Notes: generated by a model not told the origin, from the letters alone. 64,000 nucleotides of DNA from Carpediemonas membranifera BICM (GCA_019828565.1 JAHDYR010000069.1:564799-628798); one strand, 5' to 3'. Counted from the stretch's first letter, positions 27,995 through 63,300 are shown. Program-made: numbers and translations.

Positions 27995-28051
27995 TTGAGT
28001 TCCCCGAACGGCCTTCGAAATTTGGTGTCCTTTGCCTGCACATTGGCTGAA

Positions 28052-28117
28052 TGAAGTCTGCTATAGACGATTGAGAGTCTGTTTTACTGCTTGCACTGTG
28101 CACTCTATGATACTTCA
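28052..28117. mobile_element. Solo LTR-like repeat (66 bp, family C) with perfect 5-bp TSD CTGAA
   Basis: TGAAGTCTGCTATAGACG...TATGATACTTCA is flanked by CTGAA at 28047-28051 and 28118-28122. It is nearly identical to 37774-37838. Confidence 0.9.
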
Positions 28118-28254
28118 CTGAAACACCCATCTGACAGCCGCATAGACCCTGTTACTGATCAGCAACACGATGCTGATGCAATACAGAAAGTACCTCTGCA
28201 TATTAATTTTCTGTTGCTTCACTCAAACAGTCTTCCCGCTTCAATGAATTTTAT

Positions 28255-28872: not shown

Positions 28873-28913
28873 GCTCCTTTCGATTTCTTCGGCTAAAGTG
28901 CGAAATGGGGGAC

Positions 28914-29009
28914 TGAAGTCTGGAAACAAGTGTGAAGTGTTTAAGGGGTATACCTCCTACGCGGTGATAATGGCTCTAACTGCGTCTACATAGTCATGTA
29001 AATACCACA
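28914..29009 (-). repeat. 3' LTR of element A (96 bp)
   Basis: Identical to 37673-37768 and preceded on the minus strand by PPT GGAGGAGGGGTAG. Confidence 0.95.
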
Positions 29010-29037
29010 CTACCCCTCCTCCATCAGAGCCATGCTT

Positions 29038-29477
29038 CTATTTCCGACTCTGACCGACTTTGCGCAAATGCTCGTCAACGCACTTTGCAAGTTGGCTATG
29101 GTCCTCCATGTACTTCAATAACACGATGTTGGACCGCATGTCTTCGTCTGTTGCCACTCTCCAGGTGTCTTCGCTGGCTTCGAATCCCAGCCACCTGCAC
29201 CTCACTTCCGGTGTCCTGTTGGCGTCTCTTCTAATCCTCCAGTCCACTATCTTCTTGATATACGCCTGGCTTCTATCTAAGGCGCATGCTACTTTGGCCT
29301 TCTCTTCGCTCCACTCTCCCTCGGCGACTTTCAGGTGAGAAACGTGCTTCTGATACGTCTTCTTCGTCTCTGGGTCTCGCACAACGTACGAGTTCGCCTT
29401 CCCGGGGACCTTCCTGACCACCATCAACGGTCCGCGCCACTTGAGGTCGTACTTCTTGCGAATCTCCGCGTCGCGAT
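29038..29477 (-). CDS. Element A integrase C-terminus (GPY/F region + chromodomain), cut off by element B
   Basis: DRDAEIRKKYDLKWRGPLMVV...YIKKIVDWR...VRCRWLGFEASEDTW. It joins in frame to ...GYWVFVDR at 34005 when element B and one TSD copy are removed. Confidence 0.9.
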
Positions 29478-29530
29478 TGTGGTATGGATAGAACAGCTAG
29501 CGAAAGAGGTTTAATCAATTGATTGGGACA
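29478..29530 (-). repeat. 3' LTR of element B (53 bp)
   Basis: TGTGGTATGG...TTGGGACA, identical to 33952-34004. Confidence 0.95.
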
Positions 29531-32500
29531 CTACCCCTCTCCTCGAGGTGACGGCGCACGACGGACGTGCGGGCGGCGTCAGAGTTGGGACCCTCCCACG
29601 TGGCCTTAGCCTCAGGGAAGCCGAGCCACTTAATGAGGAGGTCGCCAGTCTCGTCGTCGACCTCTAGGACTTTCTCGACGTAATACTCCTCGTCGTCGGT
29701 AGCCGCGATGCGCAACAGTTCGGCGTCGCTGAGGGGGCCTTGGCAGATGCGGATTAACTGGCTCAGGTGGACCCGGCGGCTCTTGCCGCCAGTGAGCGGC
29801 GTGATCTCCGCTGCGTAACCGTCGGCGGCTGTGATGCGGAATGGGCCGCGGTGGCCGTGTAGCTTCGTGGGGCTCTCGTTCTTACGAAGGACCAGAGTGC
29901 CCGGCTCGATCGGGGGCGTCGGCTCTGCGGTCCTTGTCATTGCCTGCTGGCGGTTGAGGGCCTGGTCGGCGAGGATCTGGAGGTGCTCGGTGAGCGCGTC
30001 GATGTAGGAGGCTATGTCGTCCAGGGGAGTATGAACTCTACCCTCCTCCTTGGGTGCGATCGTGAAGTCGCGAGCGGAGGCATGCTTGCCCATCAAGAGA
30101 GCAATGGGTTCGACGCCGGTGACGGAGTGGACCGTAGTGTTCAGGATGTACTGGACGTATGGGACCACGGAGGCCCAGGCGTCGTAACGGTCAAACATCA
30201 GACAGAGCACACGTAAGTGTCGCTTGACTTCCTGGTTGCGTCTCTCGGCCAGGCCGTTTGACTGAGGGTGGAAAGGGATTGTCCGGTGGTACGTGACCTG
30301 CAAGCGATCAAGGAAAGCTTCTATCATCCGATTGCGGTACTCGGGGCCGTTGTCCGAAAGGAACTCGCGAGGCACACCGTAGCGTCCGATGATGGACCAA
30401 AGTGCCAGCCCGACCGTCGTCGCGTTGTTGGAAGCTGTGGGGATGAGCTCCGTGAAGCGGGTAAACATGTCGGTTGCCACCACGATGTATCTGAAACCCT
30501 CGGAGTCGACAGGGAAAGGACCCATGGTGTCTACAGCGATGGTCTGGAAGGGTCGGTCGCGCAGAGAAGACTGCGTTGTGGTCTTAATGAAAGCGGAGAG
30601 GCGTGCCTTAGCGCAGTACACGCAGGTTGACACGACTGCGTGCACGTCGGAGTGGAGGCCTGGCCAATCGTGCCCAAGCTGGCGGACGTTCCTGATGGTG
30701 GCCTGCTCGCCCTCGTGGTATCGGTGAGCTTCTTGCACGATCTTGCGCTTGGCGTCTTCGTCGAGCTCGGCCTCTGAGACGTTGTTGACCTGCGTGACTG
30801 TGGCCTGCGGGTTGTATCGACTGAGTGCGTCGGCCAGTGTGTTCTGCGCGCCTGCGATGTGTCTGATGACGAACTCGAACTCTTGGATCATAAGCAGCCA
30901 GCGGAGGTGCTTACGGTTTTCCTGGCCAGCCTTGGAGTGCAGGTAGACCAAGTTGCGGTGGTCCGTCCAGATCGTCAGGTCCTGGTGGACTCTAAAGATG
31001 GGCGAGAGGTCAGGCCGAGTGAGGCAGTAGATGATCGCGAACAGCTCCTGGTCGTACGTGCACCAACGCGACTGTGTGTCGTTGAAGACCTTTGAGAAGA
31101 ATGACACGACGCGCCATGTGTTGTCCGAGTCAAGCTGCAGTAAGACACCGCCGATGCCTTCGAGAGAGGCGTCGGTCTCGAGGCGCCAGGGCCTGCTCTG
31201 GTCCGGATGGGCGAGGACCTCTTCGTCTGTCACGGCCTGCTTGAGCTGATCAAACAGAGCCTGAAGCGTGTCGTCCCAGTCGTTGAAGGTGTAGGGTGGG
31301 ACCTTGCTGACCAAGGCCTGGAGCGGCTTGAGGCGTGTCTGGCAGTCGGGGATATAGTCACTGAGGTATGTGAACATACCGATGATCATGCGTAGGTCCT
31401 TGACCGAGTGAGGTGCGGCGAGGTCCTGCATGGATCTGACACGAGTAGGGCTCATGCGGCGGCCCTTGCCATCGACGATATCGCCGAGGATCTCGATAGA
31501 CGTCGCCCCGAAGACACACTTGTCGCCGCGGAGGCGGACGTTGCGTTCCTCTGCGATACAGAGTAGGCGGTCGACGTGGTCTAGAAGCTCCTGAGGTGTC
31601 TTGGCTCGACCAAAGATGTCATCGATGTAGTTCTTCGTACCGTCGGCGCGCACAGGGGCAAGGATTGCCTGGATGGCCCGCTGGAACTGTGACGGTAGGT
31701 TACGAAGACCAAAGGGTGCAAAGTTGTACTCTTTGAACCGGCCTGGCAGCGTTATAGCGGTGAGGTACTTGTGGTCTTCGCGTACTGGCATTTGATGAAA
31801 ACCTGACCGGAGGTCATAAAGCGAAGAAGTACTTGGCACCGATGAAGTCGTTGGTGAAGGTGCGGATATCTGCGAGGGGGAACCTGTCTGGTGTAGTTAC
31901 CGAGTTAAGCTCGCGGTAGTCGGCGCAAAGTCGTAACTCGCTTGACTTCTTCACTACGATGACGGCTGCGGATGCCACGTGGCTGTAGGAATCGCGTACG
32001 ATGCCCTGTCTGTCCATGTCGTCGATAATCTCGTGCACTCTTTCGGCGGTGGATGCCGTGAGCGGTCGAGGGGCATGGTTGGGTAGGGGTGCGCCTGGCA
32101 CGATGTCAATCGTTGCGGCGGCGATCTGGGCGCCGTCAGGGTGCAGCTCGCCGAATACCGGTGCGTGCCGGCGGATGACATCAGCCATCTCGGCTTTGAG
32201 CGGGAAGTCGCTTGCGATGCGTGTGCCAAGTGGGCCCGCGTCGTCGCTGACGATGTTGTTGACTGCGTGGAAGTCATCGGTCTGGTCGTCGGGGAGGCCT
32301 TCGTCCTCGCCGTCGTGAACTTGCGGGCGGAGGCGAAGCATGATGCCCTCGTCGGACATGAGGCCTAAGAACCACAATATATCCGAGCCGATGAGGACCT
32401 TATCGGCCCTGCCGCTGATGACGTGCAGGGGCCAATCGATGATCGTTCGGCGGTCGCCCAAGCGGTCCGCGACCAGCGTTGTCTCGAAGGTGCCGTGTTG

Positions 32501-33939
32501 CTGGAGACCTTGGTCGTCAGGGCCCGTCAGCTGGACCATGTCGGGGCCCCTCCTGCCAAACTGGGCGAGTGCGTTGGCGAGGTCCAGCGAGATGGTGGAC
32601 ACTACGGAGCCAGGGTCGACCGTCGCTGAGATAAGCGTGTCACCTATCGTCACTGGAATCCGGAGAAGCCGGCCCGGCGAGTAAGCGTGCTCGGCATGCT
32701 CTACGTTCTGAACGCTGCCTTGTTGGGGGCTTGTTGGGGGGTGTCGGTGTGAATGGTGTGGCCTGCTTGGGGTTCTGCCTGAACTGCCAAGGACCCTTCG
32801 ACGTCGATGGTTGCTGGGGCTGCTGTGGTTGTCCAGCGGCCTGTCGTTGGGGACCAACTGCCTGCGGCTGGCGTGACTGGTTCTGCTGGGCGGCTGAGGC
32901 TTGGTGTGGTGTGCGTTGAGAGGCCTGGCCCTGGCGGGGATCTTGAGGTTGGCGGCCCGCCGGTGTGGCTCTGTTAGCCTGACTCTGGCGCTTCAGCAGC
33001 CGGCACTCTTCAGTAGAGTGGCCGCCGGGACCGTGGACGCGGCAGGTCTTGCGGCCGTTGCCCGGTGTAGCGGGGACCTTGGCGCCTGCCATGGGACCGG
33101 AGGTCCTCTGGCAGAAGGACCAAGGCGTGACGATCGTCCCATCGGAGTTAGTTGGCAAAGCCAGGATGCGGTGCTGGACGTCATCGATGGTGGTGGCGCC
33201 GTCGGCGAAATCCTCGAAGGCGAGGGCGGCTTCGGTGACGTCAAAACCGCGGGTCAGCACGCGGAAAAGCGTGGATATCAGCCTCTTCTCGGTGAGGGGC
33301 GTGTAACCGTTTTCTTCTGTCGGGAACTTGGGGTTCAGCTGGCGACAGTGCTTGCCGAAAGCTAGGAACATCTTCTGCATAGAGGTGATGTCTCCACCTG
33401 TGAGCGTGGTCCTTTCCAGGATCGCCGCCGCGCGAGCGCGCTGGGTTAGCCCGCTGGGCGGGTGTCAGCTCGAAGTACGCGGTGTAGGTGAGCAAGAGGT
33501 CCGCCCGCTCGCGGAGCTCCTCCCTCGAGAGGCGCTCTGAGGCGTTGGTCGAGGTGTCTGGGGCCGTCGGTGGCGGACTGACCGCCTTGAGGGCTGCGGT
33601 GATGAAGGCCTGCTTCAGCTCGTCTGAAGCGATCGAGGCCGCTTGGGTGTCTATATCCTTGAGCTTGGCCAGGAGAGCGCTGAGCTCCTCGGCCGATTTG
33701 TCGTCGTCGTTCTTCTCGGGTTCATTCTGCTCGGAAGGCTTATGAATGGGAGGACGGATCTCTGTCTCAAAGAAGCATTGGAAATCCTCGAATGTTGGGA
33801 ATCTCGTTGTCGGGATGAACGCCGCGCGGATTTCGGCTAGTTTCTCGCTCCCGAGGAAAAAGAGGATGCTAGACGGCTGCTTTTTGCTTGCAACATGAAG
33901 ACGATACTCGTCTAAACGGCTGTTGCTGACTAAAACCAT
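29515..33939 (-). CDS. Element B gag-pol (Gag, protease, RT, RNase H, integrase, chromodomain), split by frame changes near 33450, 32700 and 31817
   Basis: Knuckle CRVHGPGGHSTEEC, protease VDPGS, RT LRLCADYRELN / DLRSGFHQ / YIDD, RNase H TDAS, integrase H-H-C-C with VDTMGP / SDNG / NGLAER, chromodomain YYVEKVL...IKWLGFPEAKATWE. Confidence 0.93.
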
Positions 33940-33951
33940 GACAGTGATCAC

Positions 33952-34004
33952 TGTGGTATGGATAGAACAGCTAGCGAAAGAGGTTTAATCAATTGATTGG
34001 GACA
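33952..34004 (-). repeat. 5' LTR of element B (53 bp)
   Basis: Identical to 29478-29530. Confidence 0.95.
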
Positions 34005-37000
34005 GCGATCCACGAAGACCCAGTAACCCGCTGCCACGCGCGACTCAGGGTGCTGCCGCTGAATGTCAGCCGCTCGCTTCTGGCTGTCCTGCTTCTTCTT
34101 CGCCGCTGTCTGCTCCATATTCCTTCTTCTATTTTCTTCGTTCTGGATCATCCTGCGCGCAGCCTCCACCTCCTCCATCCTCTGTTCCTTGAGCTTGTCC
34201 ACGGTCGCTCTGGTTCCATCCGCCACTACCAGTCTCCACGCCGACGACCCGGTCGCCCTCGAACGCGCCGAGTTGATGATGTTCTGGATCGACGGGAGCA
34301 GACCCTTCCATCTCCTGGTCTGCCGTTCATACATCTCGCACCGCAGGTGGCGGTTGACCTCTTTGTTCCACCGCTCGACCACGCCGTTCTCCTCGTGGTA
34401 GTACGGCGTCGTGTGGTTGACCCGCGCCCCGGTCTCCCTGGCCCACGCGTGAAACTCGGTCGATGCGAACTGCGACCCGTTATCTGCTACCCACTCGACC
34501 GGCATCGGGAAGTGGGTGAGGTAGAACCTCTGCAATGCCTCGATGGTTTCTCGTGACGACACTGTCTTCAGCGGGACCAGGGTGACCCATCGCGACGTTT
34601 CTTCCACAACTGTCAGGATGTTCCGGTACTCGCCGTCGGCCTCTTTCATGACGATGGTGTCCACGAACACTCGACCATACGGTCCCAGCGGCTCGCGCGG
34701 CGCTCGACTGGTACGGGTCGCCCCCCATACCCGACTTCTGGCACACGGGGCATCGTTTGACCATCGTTGACACGTCAGCTTCGGCTCCGTCCCAAGACAG
34801 TCCGATGTCCTCAAGCTTCCACAGGGTCTGTTGCACCCCATGGTGGCCCTTCCCAGCGCCGTGTACCTCCTTGAACCTCGCTTCCTTCTGACTCTCCGGC
34901 AGTGTCGGGCTCGCCTCCTGTGTCGTCCTGAACTCGTCTACTCTGAACAGCAGTTGCCCCTGCGGTCTCGGCTTGCTCTCTTCTGTCTCAGCGCCGGCTG
35001 CCGCTGGGCCATCCTCGTCTGACTCCGTCCGACTCTGGTCCGGAATGTCCTCCTGCTCCTGCTTCGCCTGCTCCTCTGCGAGCGCCGCCCTCGATAGCCC
35101 GTCGGCGATCTCGTTAAGGCTGCCCGGCACGTGCTCCACGTCGAATTTGTAGTTGGCGAGCTCGAGTGCCCACCGCTGCACCATGTCGTCATTGGCGCCC
35201 CACACGTACGCGAGGTTCCTGTGGTCACACCACACCTTGAACTCCTGCGTTGCCAGCAGACGCCGAGCCTTGCGGATCGCGTGGACAATGGCGAATGCCT
35301 CCTTCCTATACGTGCTCCACCTGCGCTGCGAGCCGGACAGTGCCTTCGACAAGAACATAATCGGCCGCTTGCCGCCCTCGTCCTCCTGCATCAGCACCGC
35401 GCCGACCCCCTTGTCCGACGCGTCCGTGTACAGCGCGAGTCTCTTCGCCGGGTCCGGGTGTGTCAGCACCGGCGCGCTCGTGACCGCCTTCTTCAATGCC
35501 TCGAGCGCCCTGTCCTGGTCCGGCCCCCACGGCGGCGCGTCCTTGAGCTCCATCCTCCTGATCGGCTCGGCCAGGTCCGCGTACCCCGGGATGAACTTCG
35601 CGAAGAAGTTGAAGATACCCAGGAGGGCCCTGACGTCGCTGACGTTGTGCGCCGGGGCGAGCTTCTGTACACCCTCCACCCTCCACTCAGGCACGGACCG
35701 TCCCTCCTTCGACACAGTCCAGCCCAAGTACTCTACCTCGTCAAGGTTGAAAGCGCACTTCTTCTCGTTAAGCTTGATCTTCCGCTCCCTCACCCGGTCC
35801 ATGACATGCCGGAGGTTGGCCTCGTACTCCTCCACCGTCTCCCCGAACACCAGGATGTCGTCAACGTAGATGAGGCAGGCCGTCCCCAACATGTCCGCGA
35901 ACGCCTCCTCCAGCGCTGCCTGCATATGGCCCGCCGCCGTCGACAACCCGAACGGCATCGTGTTATAGGTGAAGTGGCCGTCGGGTGTGGTGAACGCCAA
36001 CAGCTCCTGCGTCCCCTCCTCGACCGGCACCTGGTGGAACGCGCTGCTCGCGTCCAGGGCTGCGAACTTGACCTTGCCCTCCAGCATCGTCATGATGTCG
36101 TCGATGGCCGGGAGGTCGTGCTGGGGATCCTCGATGAACTTGTTCAAGCGGATATAGTTGATGCACGGGCGCCACTCCCCACCCTTCTTCTTCGCCATGA
36201 CCACGCGCGACGACCAGGGCGACTTCGACCTACGGATGATCTTCGCCTCTTCCAGTTTCTTGAGGTGCCCCGACAGTGCCTGCTCAATCTCCGGCTGCCG
36301 CCTCCTCGGCAATTCGAAGTAGGGCACCGCATCATCACTCAGACTGATCTTGTACGGCTTCAGGTCTGCCGCGCCGTCGGCCGGGCCGAAGCAATCGGCA
36401 TACTCCTCGCGGATCTGCTCGTCCATCGTGGCCAGCAACTCCTCATCGCCGTCGACGTCGGTCGTGGTGGCCTCCACGTTGATCAGGCCCAGCTCGGCAA
36501 GGGTCCTGAAGCAGATTGTGGGTTTGCAGCCAGCGATCACGTCCCAGTGGAGCGTGACGTCGACGTCTTTCTTCAATGCGAGTCTGACCTTCTTCGATCC
36601 TCCCGTCAGCACTCTCGCCGTCGAGTTGTCGCCCAGCTTGACCCACCGGTCGGCCCACTTCGTCCGGATGCCCCACTCTCTGGCCAACTCCGGCGGGATG
36701 AAATTGCTGCTAGCACAAGTATCGAGCCGCACCACATGCTCCTTCAGCCCGACACTCATGCTGCACTCCCAAACCTTGCTTCCCACCCCCGAGGCAAAGA
36801 CTAAACACTGATCGGGTTTACTGGCGTCCGGACAGTCCTTCGCGACGTGCCCCACCTTACCACACCGATAACAGCGACGGGTGCCTCCGGCTATCTTCGG
36901 CTCTGGGCAGTCCTTGGCCATGTGGCCCCCACCCCCGCAGTTATAGCAGTGCAACTTCTTCTGCCCTTGCTCTTGCTTCTGCACGTCTTTCTTCGATGTA

Positions 37001-37650
37001 GACGATGTGGGGGGCTCCAACAGCCCAAACTGCTTCATTGCCTCGCGCTTCTTCCTCTCCCACAGCATTACTGATTGCATGACTCCGGCTGAGTCAGTGC
37101 ATGCGTCAACGACGCCCTGGAGTATTGCGTGTTGTCCTTCGTGCTTGCACGCCTCCAAGATCAGCCTCTTCGTTGCATCTATCGGGATGTCCTCTATCTT
37201 CTGGAACAACACCGCCGCTCTCGCTGAAATCCTGTTGAGCACTTCGCTTACGCTCTTCTCAGGTCCATTCGTCAAAAGCTGCGTCCGTGCGAACACTTCA
37301 GTGGGTAGGACGAGCTCTTCTATGCTCTTCTTCCAAAATGCGTCCTCCTTCTTCTGGTGTGCGCGTCGTGCCTTCTTGACGTCGTCTTGATGCTTCATGT
37401 ACTGCTGAGTCGACACCGATCCGTTACCGTTCGTCGCACATGTCGGCTCCACGAACTCGTCGATCCTGGACTTCCCTGTCTCGCGTAAAACCTGTCTCTT
37501 CAACGCAGGCTTGACCAGGGAGTGAAAAGGCTTACGGTGCTTGCCGTCGTCTGCCTCCAGGCTGTACTCGTCGTAGATGTCTCGTACTCGCATATACTCT
37601 TCGATCGTGAGGTCCTTCATCGGTGGACCTATCGTTACGTCTTCTCCCAT
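34005..37650 (-). CDS. Element A gag-pol single ORF (two CCHC knuckles, protease, RT, RNase H, integrase core); frameshift near 34725
   Basis: [45 protein letters not shown]...CPVC, VDT / ADNG / NGVVER. The frame change coincides with a C6 run. Confidence 0.94.
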
Positions 37651-37672
37651 TGCGTCAAACCGTAGTAATTAC

Positions 37673-37768
37673 TGAAGTCTGGAAACAAGTGTGAAGTGTT
37701 TAAGGGGTATACCTCCTACGCGGTGATAATGGCTCTAACTGCGTCTACATAGTCATGTAAATACCACA
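37673..37768 (-). repeat. 5' LTR of element A (96 bp)
   Basis: Identical to 28914-29009. Confidence 0.95.
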
Positions 37769-37773
37769 GGGAC

Positions 37774-39852
37774 TGAAGTCTGCTATAGACGATTGAGAGT
37801 TACTTTACTGCTTGCACTGTGCACTCTATGATACTTCATTACCCCTTCCCGCTCTCCCTTCCTTCTTCTTGAGAGTGATATTTCGATAGTCAGTCATCAT
37901 CGTCGGGGGTGATCAATCAGTGCTTCTCCAGTCCAGCCGGCAGTCCAGTACTTTCACACTTGCCTTCTGTCATACATCGCCGCGTGTTGCCACCACGCCA
38001 ATCTCTCCTTGCCCGTGCATGACCAGGCTCTGCACCAGGCCATCGTTATCGTCGCCTACCGACGAAGTGGAGAGTACCGAAACCTCGCCGCCGACTCACT
38101 CGTCGACCGCTTCCTGGGCGCGAAAAAATACGCTGCAGTTCGGCGGGTTGTCACCTCAATAGCCGAGATGCGACTGTGGCATGACGAGTTCATCATCCGC
38201 CTCTGCACCGCCTTCAGGGCAGCTCGTCAACAGTGCCCTCGCGAGTTCGACGTGTGGCTGGGCGAATATGCCACGAGCACCAAGCTGTCGCTCGTCAATG
38301 CCCTTGAAGGTTACTGCTGGCGCCTGGCGAAGATCATCACTCGGGTCGACACTGCCCTGACTCAGCGTGATCCAGACGTGCCCCGGGACGACATCACCCG
38401 GTTGCGCACCGAACAACGCGCTGTCAAGGCGATAGTTGATGAGCACCTTGCAAAGATCTCAACTCCGGGACGAGTCGACGAGGGCGTTCTACTCACGCTG
38501 CCCTGTGTCTGGCGGATCTCCGCGGCTCTGGGAGAGCTCACGGATATGGTTGCGGCATTCAACACCGCCCATCCACCTCTTCCGGGTGACAAGCCGCTGG
38601 CGGGCCCCAAACTTGTTCCGCTTGTCCCGATGGCTCCGGTCCGCCCCGGGTTCATGCACGTTCCCTGTTCTCTCAACGTGCTGAACCCGGCTTAGCTTCT
38701 GCCCAATTTGGGGTCGACCCGGAGCATCACGCCACTGAGCGCATGACGCGAGAGCAGCTGTAGGCTCTTCCTCCGAACATCCGTCGGGTGCTGTCTGTCA
38801 AGACAGATGGGGTCGCCGTGGACCTCACGGTCCAAGTTGGTGCTCTGCCATACGTCAGCAGACGTGCCAGTGGCAACCCGACGATGAAGCGAAAGGCTCG
38901 GGAGCGTCTGGGTGTGGATGACGCAGATGCTCGCCCCGCGCCAGACCCCGATGCCCACCTCATGGGTTTCGACCCGGGTGCTCGGGCTCTGGGTGGATTC
39001 TTCATCCGCCACCCAGATGGCACCACCAGCTCCGGTGTGGTCCCGAAGTGTGGGTACACCAAGACCCCCAGCTTCGCGTTCGATATGACTCCTGCGTCAT
39101 TCAAAAGTACAAATCTAGATAGTCTACAAAACTCGGTTAGGTTTGTGCTCCTCCACGAGCAGGAAATATTCGACGCTGGGATGGTCAAGAGCTTCCGCAG
39201 AGTGCGCCTGACGAACCACATCTTGCGTCAGAAGCACTTCCACAGAGCTGGGGAGCAGCTTGCTCGCACCCTAGGATGGACTCCTCGGCGACTCCCTCGC
39301 GGTATTGCCCCTCCCCGGGCAGCCCCCACCGGGCTGGTTGTCTTCTACGGAAGCGCTAGATTCAAGACGCCCCGTCGGGTGCATCCATGCGCGCCGTATG
39401 GTCGCTTTGCTACCTTACTACCACACATCATGAGAGCTTTCAACATCACTGCTGAAGTGCGGATGACTAACGAGTTCCGAACCTCACTCGTCTGCCCCTT
39501 CTGCCGCGCGAGGTTCCGTAGAACTCGCTACACGAGGCGCACGATGCGATGCCACAACCGGAATTGTCAAGGTGCTCCATGGTACAGACAGCAACGCCTC
39601 AATTCCGATCCTACTACCACCACTTGGCTCAATCTCTCCCACAGAGACAAGACTGCTGCACAGAACATCTTGGATTGCGGCCTCATGACGGATGCACAGT
39701 ATCAAGCCAGTGCTTTCAGAAATCCAGCCCGTCTTCCCAACTATGACCCCAATACACTAATTACGGCTAACCAGCCGCAAGTCTTCGCCTCCGGGCAAGC
39801 TAATTGAAGTGGAGAGACGCAGTGCTTGCACTGTGCACTCTATGATACTTCA
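37774..39852. mobile_element. Element C: non-autonomous element bounded by short LTR-like repeats, carrying a Fanzor gene
   Basis: The left repeat 37774-37838 and right repeat 39805-39852 both run TGAAGT...TGCTTGCACTGTGCACTCTATGATACTTCA (last 30 bp identical). A PPT-like tract lies at 37839-37850 and the flanks are GGGAC / GGGAT. The right boundary could instead be 40557. Confidence 0.7.
37913..39807 (+). pseudogene. Fanzor1 (eukaryotic TnpB-family RNA-guided endonuclease), interrupted at about 38660-38763 and lacking a clear start
   Basis: ORF 38788-39807 has SVKTDGVAV, RuvC-I LMGFDPG, VVFYGSARF, RuvC-II NEFRTSLVCPFC, CHNRNC and RuvC-III HRDKTAAQNI. The upstream frame 37913-38695 ends in KLVPLVPMAPVRPGFMH, similar to the Fanzor1 F-S-L-L-P...P-x-Y-I segment. 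Confidence 0.88.
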
Positions 39853-40459
39853 GGGATGGTTAGACTCCACTCACCCACTTCAGCCCTCGTCTGTACCATC
39901 GGTCTGTCGTGCTTTCAGTCGTCGGTCTGCACGAAAAGATGCGTCGTCCATCGTCTGTGTCGAACGCTGCTGCCTTCTTTCGCGTCTGTGCTCGTCTGTT
40001 ACGCGCTCATCTGTCGTCCATTGCCGGCGTCTGAAGCTCGTGTCGTCTTCGTCATCTTCGTCTGTTGTGAGAGACACTAGTGGTGGAAAGCGGTTGTAGC
40101 AGTAGTAAAGACGCTTTGTGTTGTATGACGCTGGTTTCTTGTGTTTTGAGGGATGCTGCCTGCTGATGAACGCTGAAAAGAAATGATCGATGCAGGCAGC
40201 TCAATATACTCCGATGCCTTCCAAGATATACACGGTGAAGGCTTCCGTTAACAAGGCTATTGGCGAGATTAACGGTGGAGGCGATAACAACGCGCCGCGG
40301 CGAGGAAATCTTGAACCCGGCATGCGTTCTTTCACGCAGGCTAAGTACACATTCACTTGCCTGCTTGCGTGCGTCTCTGCATCTGCGCACGCGTTGACCC
40401 CACCGAGGACGGTCAACCTGTTCCACCGACCAGGAGGTCCTCGCGCAGATCGTCAGTGG

Positions 40460-40554
40460 ACGATTGATAGAGTATGATGAACTACACTGCGATCCTGATG
40501 CTGCTTGGATCACTGTGTGTTTTGGACTCAACAATTCTAATCCTGCGTGGCACA
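40460..40554. repeat. Dispersed structured repeat (family D)
   Basis: 40460-40531 matches 56013-56084 with one mismatch. The 3' part matches 55888-55917 and 56228-56251. Confidence 0.85.
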
Positions 40555-40664
40555 TCAGGGACGCTGAAAGTGGGTTTCCAGACACTCATGACACAACTAC
40601 GCCTTCACTAAGACCTGCCTTATAAACATCTCCATTCAATAGCCGCATCGATCCCTTGCTTCAT

Positions 40665-55798: not shown

Positions 55799-55887
55799 TA
55801 GTGACCTAGATGGCTTGGCGCGTTTTCCAAGTTTGCAAGCATACTTCGCAGGTTATGGTCACAATGTTGTAGCGTTTAGAGGTATTA

Positions 55888-56251
55888 GACTCAAGTATTC
55901 TTATCCTGCGCGGCACACTACCTCCACTCACCGACTTCGCTTGCCAGTGAGCTCGCTATCATTAACTTGCTAAGTTGAGCAAGCACGCGCTGCGGCGCGT
56001 GATATGCTGCGCACGATTGATAGAGTATGATGAACCACACTGCGATCCTGATGCTGCTTGGATCACTGTGTGTTTTGGACTCAAGTATTCTTATCGATTT
56101 ATACATGTACATAAAGTGTTACCGGTCCCACCGGTCCAACGCTGTCAGCGGCCCGACCGGGATTAGAGCCCAGGAGCGGAGCAGCGAGTAACGTTCGCGA
56201 AACGGGAGTAGATGTCGTAGTTGCCGCAGTATTCTTATCCTGCGCGGCACA
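55888..56251. repeat. Cluster of three partial family D repeats
   Basis: 55888-55917, 56013-56095 and 56228-56251 share AGTATTCTTATC(CTGCGCGGCACA). Confidence 0.8.
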
Positions 56252-60362: not shown

Positions 60363-63300
60363 TCATCTCATGCTAACAGACGAAACGGCAAAGGGGTTGG
60401 GGGCCGCTTCTCTCAAGGCCCCAGGCTGGGTTTGCTCAGCTGGCACGCAGGCTGCAGTAACATCGGCATCGTTGCCAGCACGTGGCGCTGGATCTTGACC
60501 CGGGCTGGGACCCTGGTGCTCGTCGGGCGGGGCCGCAGACACTGCTGGTCTCGGGCTCGCGGCATCGCCCGCCGCCACTGCCGAGCTCGCACTGCTGTCC
60601 ACAGCCTTCTTCGCTTTCTCCATCGCCTTCGCCCCCTCCGTCGCCCCGGCCCCAGCCTTCTCCGGCCCGCGACCCGCCCCGGCCGGCTGGACCTCGACTT
60701 CCCTGACTTCGATGAATTTGCCCGACTGCGGCGGAGTGACATTGTCGGTCGCATCACGGTCGCTGAGTCGAACCCGAGTCCATGTGCCGGACGCCTTGTC
60801 CTTGAGGTAGACCGCCTCGTTGTTGCCAGACTGTACCAGCCGGCTGCACGCAATAGAGGTCGAAAACTCCTGGCTTTGTGATATGAACGCGGTCAACGGT
60901 CCCGTCGGGGTGACCATCACGAGGAGCAAGAAGGTGGGGCGCACGACAAGGCCGCACACAGGGTATGTATACACCACCTTCAACGGCTGAACGGCAAAGC
61001 GGGTCTGGGTCTTCTGAGGTAAGAGCGCCAGTTTCAGCACGAGCATCGGGATGGTCTGGGCGAGGTCCCCGGTCAGGAACAGTGCCCGCTGCTCCTTGCA
61101 GTAGTAAAGGCCGAACGTGCCCCCCGCGAGGAGCTCCCACCCACTCGGATCGGTCGGGGCCGCAGACACTGCTGGTCTCGGGCTCGCGGCATCGCCCGCC
61201 GCCACTGCCGAGCTCGCACTGCTGTCCACAGCCTTCTTCGCTTTCTCAATCGCCTTCGCCCCCTCCGTCGCCCCGGCCCCAGCCTTCTCCGGCCCGCGAC
61301 CCGCCCCGGCCGGCTGGACCTCGACTTCCCTGACTTCGATGAATTTGCCCGACTGCGGCGGAGTGACATTGTCGGTCGCATCACGGTCGCTGAGTCGAAC
61401 CCGAGTCCATGTGCCGGACGCCTTGTCCTTGAGGTAGACCGCCTCGTTGTTGCCAGACTGTACCAGCCGGCTGCACGCAATAGAGGTCGAAAACTCCTGG
61501 CTTTGTGATATGAACGCGGTCAACGGTCCCGTCGGGGTGACCATCACGAGGAGCAAGAAGGTGGGGCGCACGACAAGGCCGCACACAGGGTATGTATACA
61601 CCACCTTCAACGGCTGAACGGCAAAGCGGGTCTGGGTCTTCTGAGGTAAGAGCGCCAGTTTTAGCACGAGCATCGGGATGGTCTGGGCGAGGTCCCCGGT
61701 CAGGAACAGTGCCCGCTGCTCCTTGCAGTAGTAAAGGCCGAACGTGCCCCCCGCGAGGAGCTCCCACCCACTCGGATCGGTCGGGGCCGCAGACACTGCT
61801 GGTCTCGGGCTCGCGGCATCGCCCGCCGCCACTGCCGAGCTCGCACTGCTGTCCACAGCCTTCTTCGCTTTCTCAATCGCCTTCGCCCCCTCCGTCGCCC
61901 CGGCCCCAGCCTTCTCCGGCCCGCGACCCGCCCCGGCCGGCTGGACCTCGACTTCCCTGACTTCGATGAATTTGCCCGACTGCGGCGGAGTGACATTGTC
62001 GGTCGCATCACGGTCGCTGAGTCGAACCCGAGTCCATGTGCCGGACGCCTTGTCCTTGAGGTAGACCGCCTCGTTGTTGCCAGACTGTACCAGCCGGCTG
62101 CACGCAATAGAGGTCGAAAAACTCCTGGCTTTGTGATATGAACGCGGTCAACGGTCCCGTCGGGGTGACCATCACGAGGAGCAAGAAGGTGGGGCGCACG
62201 ACAAGGCCGCACACAGGGTATGTATACACCACCTTCAACGGCTGAACGGCAAAGCGGGTCTGGGTCTTCTGAGGTAAGAGCGCCAGTTTCAGCACGAGCA
62301 TCGGGATGGTCTGGGCGAGGTCCCCGGTCAGGAACAGTGCCCGCTGCTCCTTGCAGTAGTAAAGGCCGAACGTGCCCCCCGCGAGGAGCTCCCACCCACT
62401 CGGATCGGTCGGGGCCGCAGACACTGCTGGTCTCGGGCTCGCGGCATCGCCCGCCGCCACTGCCGAGCTCGCACTGCTGTCCACAGCCTTCTTCGCTTTC
62501 TCAATCGCCTTCGCCCCCTCCGTCGCCCCGGCCCCAGCCTTCTCCGGCCCGCGACCCGCCCCCGGCCGGCTGGACCTCGACTTCCCTGACTTCGATGAAT
62601 TTGCCCGACTGCGGCGGAGTGACATTGTCGGTCGCATCACGGTCGCTGAGTCGAACCCGAGTCCATGTGCCGGACGCCTTGTCCTTGAGGTAGACCGCCT
62701 CGTTGTTGCCAGACTGTACCAGCCGGCTGCACGCAATAGAGGTCGAAAACTCCTGGCTTTGTGATATGAACGCGGTCAACGGTCCCGTCGGGGTGACCAT
62801 CACGAGGAGCAAGAAGGTGGGGCGCACGACAAGGCCGCACACAGGGTATGTATACACCACCTTCAACGGCTGAACGGCAAAGCGGGTCTGGGTCTTCTGA
62901 GGTAAGAGCGCCAGTTTCAGCACGAGCGTCGGGATGGTCTGGGCGAGGTCCCCGGTCAGGAACAGTGCCCGCTGCTCCTTGCAGTAGTAAAGGCCGAACG
63001 TGCCCCCCGCGAGGAGCTCCCACCTACTCCGGTCGGGCGGGAGGGCCACAAACCCGACCACAGGCGACCTATGACCCAGGCCTAGTTCCCCGCTCGTGTT
63101 TAGTCCAGTGATGTAGCGGGTCGACCCGTCGTCACAGAACATCAAGGGTCCATGCGGCTGGAGCGTGCGGGGTGTGAAGCCGGGTGGGCCGGCGAGCTCG
63201 TAGAAGCGGTTGGGGAGGGGCCTCTGGCCGTTGAACGGTTTGGCCAGGCGTTCAATAATTCTGTCTGTTGCGAAAACTAACGGGCCAACCGTAGTGAGAA

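Follow-up and report, generated by a model that had tools for sequence, protein, structure and literature searches.

A predicted Fanzor1-like nuclease gene within a non-autonomous element bearing Ty3/Gypsy-type insertion marks in Carpediemonas membranifera

Introduction

What kind of element carries the Fanzor-type gene of this locus, and by which machinery does it move? The gene lies at positions 37774-39852 of a 64,000-nt stretch of Carpediemonas membranifera DNA (the whole stretch is referred to as the window; the genome amounts to 24.2 Mb), between two short units that start with TG and end with CA, and only a 5-nt repeat away from a Gypsy retroelement. The Fanzor carriers listed by Bao and Jurka (2013) are DNA transposons only. 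Fanzor/HERMES genes often occur less than 10 kb from Gypsy elements (Jiang et al. 2023, 10.1101/2023.06.13.544871; review PMC13565253), Ty3 insertions were found near SpuFz loci (Saito et al. 2023, PMC10432273), and according to a 2026 review there is no evidence that any retrotransposon encodes a Fanzor. The reports of Jiang et al. and of PMC13565253 concern proximity only, whereas here the Fanzor gene is inside a unit that itself bears Gypsy-type insertion marks. A link between Fanzor and retroelement machinery has not been demonstrated before, and the library searched contained no literature linking Fanzor with Carpediemonas.

The original prediction for this locus, made from the sequence alone, was of a Fanzor gene in a non-autonomous element of the TRIM (terminal-repeat retrotransposon in miniature) type, with paired long terminal repeats (LTRs) and mobilized by the local Gypsy. 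Following it up across the genome, we arrive at a related but different reading, to which we assign a probability of about 0.6: the unit would be a carrier inserted by a Gypsy integrase, mobilized in trans and probably reverse-transcribed, equipped with one and a bit LTRs and with the Fanzor gene as its passenger.

The gene product resembles Fanzor1 nucleases

All protein analyses were performed on natural open reading frames (ORFs) or database proteins, without consensus building, frame repair or joining of ORF pieces. The gene remnants of the window encode the parts of a split RuvC domain in the order RuvC-I (D62 in GFDPG, 38971-38973), RuvC-II (E229 in NEFRTS, 39472-39474), zinc ribbon (CxxC...CxxxxC, 39493-39567) and RuvC-III (RD in RDKTAAQNI, 39643-39648), and the three catalytic acids foreseen for a Fanzor/TnpB-type protein are all in place. 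These motifs are conserved across three Carpediemonas families. Direct queries with the window ORFs and a 600-aa natural ORF remained below threshold (Pfam Cas12f1-like_TNB, E 0.04-0.18; Cas12f and GtFz1 in PDB, E 0.15-0.8) and were not relied on. Significant homology to known Fanzor/TnpB proteins was observed by a transitive route. When 1.8 billion representatives were searched with a profile built from 14 Carpediemonas proteins, hardly anything was retrieved except relatives of these proteins and three outside sequences (P0050-52, E 5e-5 to 8e-4); each of the three exceeds the Pfam gathering score for Cas12f1-like_TNB, and P0051 matches SpuFz1 in PDB at E 1.9e-7. Profile-profile comparison with hhalign yielded 98.85% probability (E 4e-17) with the catalytic E, the zinc ribbon/CxxC and the RD aligned, the Carpediemonas motifs falling on DEYLTSQ, CxxC and NRDVMAAxNI of TNB-domain proteins. 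Foldseek, started from an AlphaFold model of poor quality (pLDDT 49, from the predicted local distance difference test), returned six matches at E <= 0.001, all of them Fanzor or Cas12f and headed by SpuFz 9cey (E 7.8e-6), with a template-modelling (TM) score of only 0.2; the next 30 were nearly all Cas12-type, Fanzor or TnpB. Given the strength of the transitive homology, we accept the product as a putative, divergent Fanzor1-like nuclease related to TnpB and Cas12, whose activity is predicted to be RNA-guided.

With the Fanzor1 proteins SpuFz1, GtFz1 and PpFz (Saito et al. 2023, PMC10432273) it has in common the D/E/D triad and a zinc ribbon between RuvC-II and RuvC-III. A length of ~600-650 aa, the multicopy state and a stop codon that lies just 45 bp short of the carrier's right end are further points of likeness. 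On the other hand, the Carpediemonas protein comes from a metamonad and is very divergent, to the point that Pfam does not recognize it directly. As a matter of annotation, the public record calls a member of the same protein family, P0007, a "cytosine deaminase"; it aligns over its full length with the Fanzor family, and the label is probably wrong.

The gene resides in a multicopy element with unequal ends

The boundaries of the element are observed directly. BLAST of the element against the genome returned ~70 pieces, in which the right ends, where kept, all coincide at 39852 and the complete left ends all begin at the position equivalent to 37774. Full-length copies (L004-L007) measure 2468-2491 bp, setting the element at ~2.47 kb in dozens of copies, and identity between the window copy and L004 reaches 98.5%. 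This family-1 element is multicopy and non-autonomous, and its only gene is that of the Fanzor1-like nuclease. Sequence was read at 44 loci of the genome.

Both terminal units start with TG and end with CA, as had been proposed for a pair of direct repeats; however, what is truly repeated is limited to 30 bp (37809-37838, identical to 39823-39852 and to 28088-28117). This 30-mer occurs in three exact copies in the window (0 expected). With up to 3 mismatches allowed it has 118 copies in the genome, where the reversed control has none; the 100 listed places are all exact. The TGAAGT that opens the right unit overlaps the Fanzor stop codon (39805-39807), and the sequence inside this unit is the end of the Fanzor coding region, with neither a transfer RNA-type TGG start nor any likeness to the corresponding Gypsy A sequence. 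The outermost 6 bp of the element are also inverted repeats (TGAAGT...ACTTCA), within a looser inverted similarity of ~16 bp, and the termini alone therefore cannot settle the orientation of the element.

Several features relate these ends to Gypsy A, the neighboring autonomous element. The first 9 bp of the carrier equal the first 9 bp of the Gypsy A LTR (at 28914 and 37673), and over both termini the matches amount to 9/9 and 7/9 bases. The minus-strand purine tract that adjoins the left repeat is similar to those beside the LTRs of Gypsy A (29010-29022) and Gypsy B (29533-29544); it would stand at the position of a polypurine tract (PPT) if the Fanzor gene were antisense to the retro-sense strand. 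Families 1 and 2 both have a tract of this kind beside the full repeat, with a putative PPT role in each. The tract, the 9 shared base pairs and a solo copy at 28052 with a perfect 5-bp duplication had all been anticipated in the original prediction, and all were recovered. Likewise, other genomic copies turned out to have the same repeats, so that the outcome which the original prediction had named as refuting it did not materialize. Solo and two-ended copies are about equally common, with 9 of the former and 8 of the latter at 24 loci taken in the order of the list. The possibility that the two repeats of the window copy are independent solo insertions was rejected: neither has a duplication of its own, and the inner junctions are common to all copies.

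Fanzor carriers and Gypsy A share a target site

The TG...CA termini are accompanied by target-site duplications within the 4-6 bp range. Perfect 5-bp duplications number 16: six flank solos, and ten flank copies that are full, deleted or left-truncated. Four more duplications have one mismatch. Upstream of the element, the flanks follow a fixed plan: 23 of 25 independent left flanks of family 1 read TGC, 7 nt, the 5-bp duplication and then the element. The TGC sits within an 11-12-nt motif close to (A)TAAACTGCRMA, seen in the window at 28894-28913 and 28030-28051 and elsewhere in left flanks at loci L002-L043, which has 522 exact copies in the genome versus 16 for the reversed control. Integration takes place 12 nt after the TGC of the motif, and carrier orientation is invariant, with the 65-bp unit towards the motif. 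The sequence between motif and cut, and that past it, is not conserved.

The same site is used by Gypsy A, whose two LTRs are 100% identical and which encodes zf-CCHC (gag), RVT_1, RNase H and integrase domains. In its family, five of ten host-flank LTR ends lie at the same motif with the same spacing and orientation, the TGAAGTCTG end facing the motif. By this common signature, the autonomous Gypsy and the Fanzor carriers share what appears to be one integrase specificity. The window itself holds a stack of such insertions, which reads motif, 7 nt, GGGAC, Gypsy A, GGGAC (37769-37773), family-1 carrier, GGGAT, a 7-nt filler, a family-2 carrier fragment and GGGAC. Three elements entered one 5-bp site successively, each on the motif side.

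As for the motif in its own right, ORFs beside 40 free copies revealed no clear enrichment that would mark it as a promoter or 3'-end signal (downstream, 7/40 versus 11%; upstream, 4/40 versus 7%). It is often followed by an ATG within 0-30 nt. A motif array at C2:158514-167823 contains nine copies 1162-1163 bp apart, as the tandem unit includes the motif.

Copies without a start codon have moved

The Fanzor copy of the window is dead. An internal deletion of ~400 bp (full-copy positions 152-565) takes away its start codon, and two stop codons and a frameshift follow; the 2-bp insertion behind the latter is also visible in public-run contigs. An intron at the frame break (38695-38788) was considered and rejected, since L004 is continuous there, reading through the region as a 600-aa ORF, and the window copy has TGG>TAG, the 2-bp insertion and GAG>TAG. 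No fully intact family-1 gene appeared in the genome search.

The deletion is shared by L002 and L003, which occupy other sites with duplications of their own. Identical junctions define three more lineages (L010/L011/L012, L017/L018 and L029/L034), and in the first three of the four lineages the members are at different sites, each with its own duplications. Fanzor copies devoid of a start codon have thus moved, and the nuclease is not required in cis. Moved derivatives always keep ~146 bp of the left and ~370 bp of the right end. Left-truncated copies with an intact right end were also considered as 5' truncations of the type left by long interspersed nuclear elements (LINEs), a reading that was set aside: repeated motif-side insertions, as in the window stack, can erode left ends.

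A mini derivative, present in at least five copies (at L030, L038, C7:157091, C14:236927, C13:1009543 and C39:733204), consists of the last ~370 bp, i.e. ORF end and right end, behind an unrelated left part of ~50-108 nt that ends in CAGTATCGGAAGACTGCAGTAT; in the C13 copy, ~146 bp from the left end is additionally found ~100 bp upstream. Such derivatives recall the gene-less "ghost loci" of SpuFz1.

Contigs of the public runs X1 and X2 cover window positions 39440-40190 very unevenly, with a summed depth of ~390 over the element body, 1,800-29,500 over its last 400 bp (with peaks at 39550-39850) and 21,000-57,000 over the family-2 leader that follows. The runs, of uncertain type and strand, total 11 Mb, less than the genome, and may be RNA, in which case the rise in depth could reflect abundant small RNAs.

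Left termini reassort relative to the element body

Two main variants of the left unit's outer ~20 bp exist, V1 in ~34 copies and V2 in ~14, both confined to family 1, and a third has a Gypsy-A-like terminal part. On the tree of element bodies, V1 and V2 require 5 changes, against a mean of 5.5 for shuffled labels. The sister pairs L004/L005 (95/99) and L017/L018 (93/86) and the clade L010-12 (100/98) each mix V1 and V2 with perfect duplications. Since the terminus is flanked by no homology, gene conversion cannot account for this reassortment; the left end would have to be templated anew at transposition. Reverse transcriptase has such an effect on U5 through inter-molecular strand transfer, and the reassortment argues for template switching.

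A second Fanzor family follows the same plan

C. membranifera harbors at least three Fanzor families. Hits to family 2 (P0009 type) in the genome number at least 82, and in one of these a frame of 643 codons is free of stops; the third family is 52-58% identical. The left unit of family 2 measures 96 bp, agrees with the Gypsy A LTR in length and in its first 11 nt, and is followed by a pyrimidine tract. Its right end has no more than the final ~35 bp in common with that unit, reproducing the one-and-a-bit-LTR plan of family 1. We propose tentatively, at somewhat below even odds, that non-autonomous retroelements carry the Fanzor genes of two or more families as passengers, and that Ty3/Gypsy particles copy these elements and integrate them at a fixed point by the motif.

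Apart from the fragment in the stack, the window contains a small internally deleted family-2 derivative at 55885-56095. Longer variants of the family-2 LTR-like unit are found at L021:5206, L035:7788 and L041:3399 (minus strand), 11-12 nt upstream of the motif and with their ...CCACA end towards it, a placing that looks like a second hot spot; at L041 one motif is occupied on both sides. At L009:1498-1500 and L015:1498-1500 (minus), a family-2 unit (TGTGGTATTTAGAGGG...) begins 2 nt after the right end of a family-1 element. The 2-nt spacers of these independent loci differ (...ACTTCA GT TG... and ...ACTTCA CC TG...).

How the carrier might be mobilized

According to the reading that we prefer, an integrase of the Ty3/Gypsy type, supplied in trans and most likely by the Gypsy A family, would join the TG...CA ends of the carrier to target DNA with a 5-bp stagger, at TGC plus 7 nt plus 5 nt behind the 11-nt motif and in a single orientation. 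Copying would probably be templated and prone to switching, as expected of reverse transcription in Gypsy particles, and the resulting architecture would comprise one full 65-bp mini-LTR with its purine tract, the other end having only the 30 terminal bp of the LTR.

A number of results weigh against this proposal. The motif is missing at half of the Gypsy A ends, and only 44 loci of the genome were read. The end repeats are unequal in every copy, and inspection beside either repeat disclosed no primer binding site (PBS) or complementarity to transfer RNA. On the side of the nuclease, the structural model is poor, and a search for an omegaRNA gave no Rfam match, with a fold of 39600-39852 no better than shuffles (z = -1.0). 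Finally, the insertion marks of the Gypsy A type agree with the original prediction of a non-autonomous element mobilized by the local Gypsy, but its RNA or complementary DNA (cDNA) intermediate is deduced indirectly, from left-end reassortment, the public runs being contigs of uncertain type.

The alternative that survives best, though unlikely, is a cut-and-paste DNA transposon with short inverted ends, moved by an integrase-like DDE transposase encoded elsewhere. Ginger DNA transposons provide the precedent: they end in TG..CA, make 4-5 bp duplications and use an enzyme resembling Gypsy integrase, and they have long inverted repeats and encode a transposase of their own. The inverted 6-bp ends of the carrier with their looser ~16-bp extension would suit such an element, as would the many internal-deletion derivatives that retain both ends, in the manner of Ac/Ds. 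However, the long inverted repeats and own transposase of Ginger are not seen in the Carpediemonas carrier, nor are the 30-nt inverted repeats of SpuFz1 loci; only 6 bp are perfectly inverted. No transposase of this kind was seen in a genome that was not exhaustively searched. Cut-and-paste movement would pass on the ends colinearly, whereas the left terminus reassorts against the body with duplications perfect. Moreover, target, spacing and orientation are common to a bona fide Gypsy family, and the regions kept by the derivatives are asymmetric.

Distinctly unlikely, in our view, is a scenario in which the Fanzor unit between the two 30-mers is unable to integrate on its own and its DNA or cDNA recombines through the 30-mer into solo 65-bp units already resident at motif sites. 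Such recombination would explain at once the asymmetry of the ends, the reassortment of the left terminus and the inheritance of perfect duplications, and the frequency of solos fits it. On the other hand, the spacing of the 30-mer hits revealed no autonomous element with 65-bp LTRs that might seed the solos, the sub-variant adjacent to the 30-mer travels with the body rather than with the terminus in two of three informative pairs, a pattern not expected from crossing over within the 30-mer, and 30 bp is short for homologous recombination.

The element type named in the original prediction fares worse. A canonical TRIM or LARD (large retrotransposon derivative), with a PBS, a PPT, two LTRs regenerated by strand transfers and an antisense Fanzor gene, appears improbable. 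The carrier resembles these elements in the absence of gag-pol, the short direct repeats with TG..CA ends, the 5-bp duplications, the PPT-like tract, the solos with duplications of their own and the mobilization in trans that we propose for it. It departs from them in its unequal repeats, an "LTR" of 65 bp, the lack of a recognizable PBS and a protein-coding passenger on the opposite strand. Canonical regeneration yields identical LTRs, and the asymmetry of 65 versus 48 bp with 30 shared, conserved in all family-1 copies and with its analogue in family 2, therefore speaks against a two-LTR element.

Scarcely credible is a scenario in which the Fanzor and its guide RNA would cleave the motif site, leaving a 5-nt stagger, and the break would then capture mobile DNA: Cas12/TnpB-type enzymes do make staggered cuts at a set distance from a short motif, and insertion occurs 12 nt from a conserved one, but no guide match is visible, the sequence around the cut is not conserved, one-way orientation and precise TG..CA ends are not expected of end-joining, and a 5-bp stagger with TG/CA ends is an integrase product.

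Relation to known systems and significance

Yeast Ty3 is the closest parallel for the target choice. Ty3/Gypsy integration in yeast occurs within a base or two of the start sites of RNA polymerase III and generates 5-bp duplications. The Carpediemonas insertions are likewise of Gypsy type, with 5-bp duplications and a fixed point set by a short landmark; they differ in that the landmark is an 11-nt motif with ~500 exact copies, that orientation is fixed and that non-autonomous passengers use the site. Fixed-distance integration by an 11-nt motif would be a new case of site-specific Gypsy integration and possibly a natural targeting module.

Fanzor and TnpB nucleases are thought to restore the transposon at a site that it has just vacated, a function that is sensible only for elements that excise. 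In C. membranifera, two Fanzor families with well over 100 copies have carriers with the insertion marks and target choice of Ty3/Gypsy elements. If our proposal is true, it would be the first case of a gene for an RNA-guided nuclease that travels by means of retrotransposition machinery, contrary to the current view that a Fanzor is of no use to retroelements, which never excise. Should the carriers be reverse-transcribed, the nuclease must serve another purpose, one that can be tested in a single small genome.

Features of the window

The coordinates of the family-1 carrier, its parts and the neighboring insertions are collected in Table 1.

Table 1. Annotated features in and around the insertion stack of the window, in order of position.
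Feature	Position	Strand	Remarks
Solo unit, 66 bp (28052-28117)	28047..28122	+	CTGAA duplication on both sides; behind TGC (28037-39) and 7 nt
Host-side target motif and 7-nt spacer	28894..28908	+	Motif TAAAGTGCGAA; TGC at 28899-28901
GGGAC	28909..28913	.	First target-site duplication copy of the stack
Gypsy A	28914..37768	-	96-bp LTRs at 28914-29009 and 37673-37768; second Gypsy nested inside
Family-1 Fanzor carrier	37774..39852	+	Internally deleted and decayed copy; BLAST piece ends coincide genome-wide
Left terminal repeat, 65 bp	37774..37838	+	35 terminal bp (variant V1) and 30-mer
Purine-rich tract, PPT-like	37839..37870	-	Adjoins left repeat; resembles Gypsy A/B tracts
Junction of the ~400-bp internal deletion	37934..37947	+	AGTCC microhomology flanks
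Fanzor ORF piece 1	38009..38695	+	Helical N-terminal half; ends with TGG>TAG at 38693
2-bp insertion	38698..38699	+	Frameshift; second stop GAG>TAG at 38761
Fanzor ORF piece 2	38788..39807	+	Stop at 39805-07
Right terminal "repeat", 48 bp	39805..39852	+	TGAAGT, 12 unrelated bp, 30-mer (39823-39852)
GGGAT	39853..39857	.	Right duplication of the family-1 carrier; 4/5 match to GGGAC
Family-2 carrier fragment	39865..40557	+	Left LTR-like unit missing; ORF start at 40190; N-terminus matches P0009, P0014, P0018
Family-2 right-end unit ("family D repeat")	40458..40557	+	Ends ...CACATCA
GGGAC	40558..40562	.	Last target-site copy; closes the stack

Farther along the window, positions 60523-63045 hold a tandem array of four ~627-bp units that are 97-100% identical.

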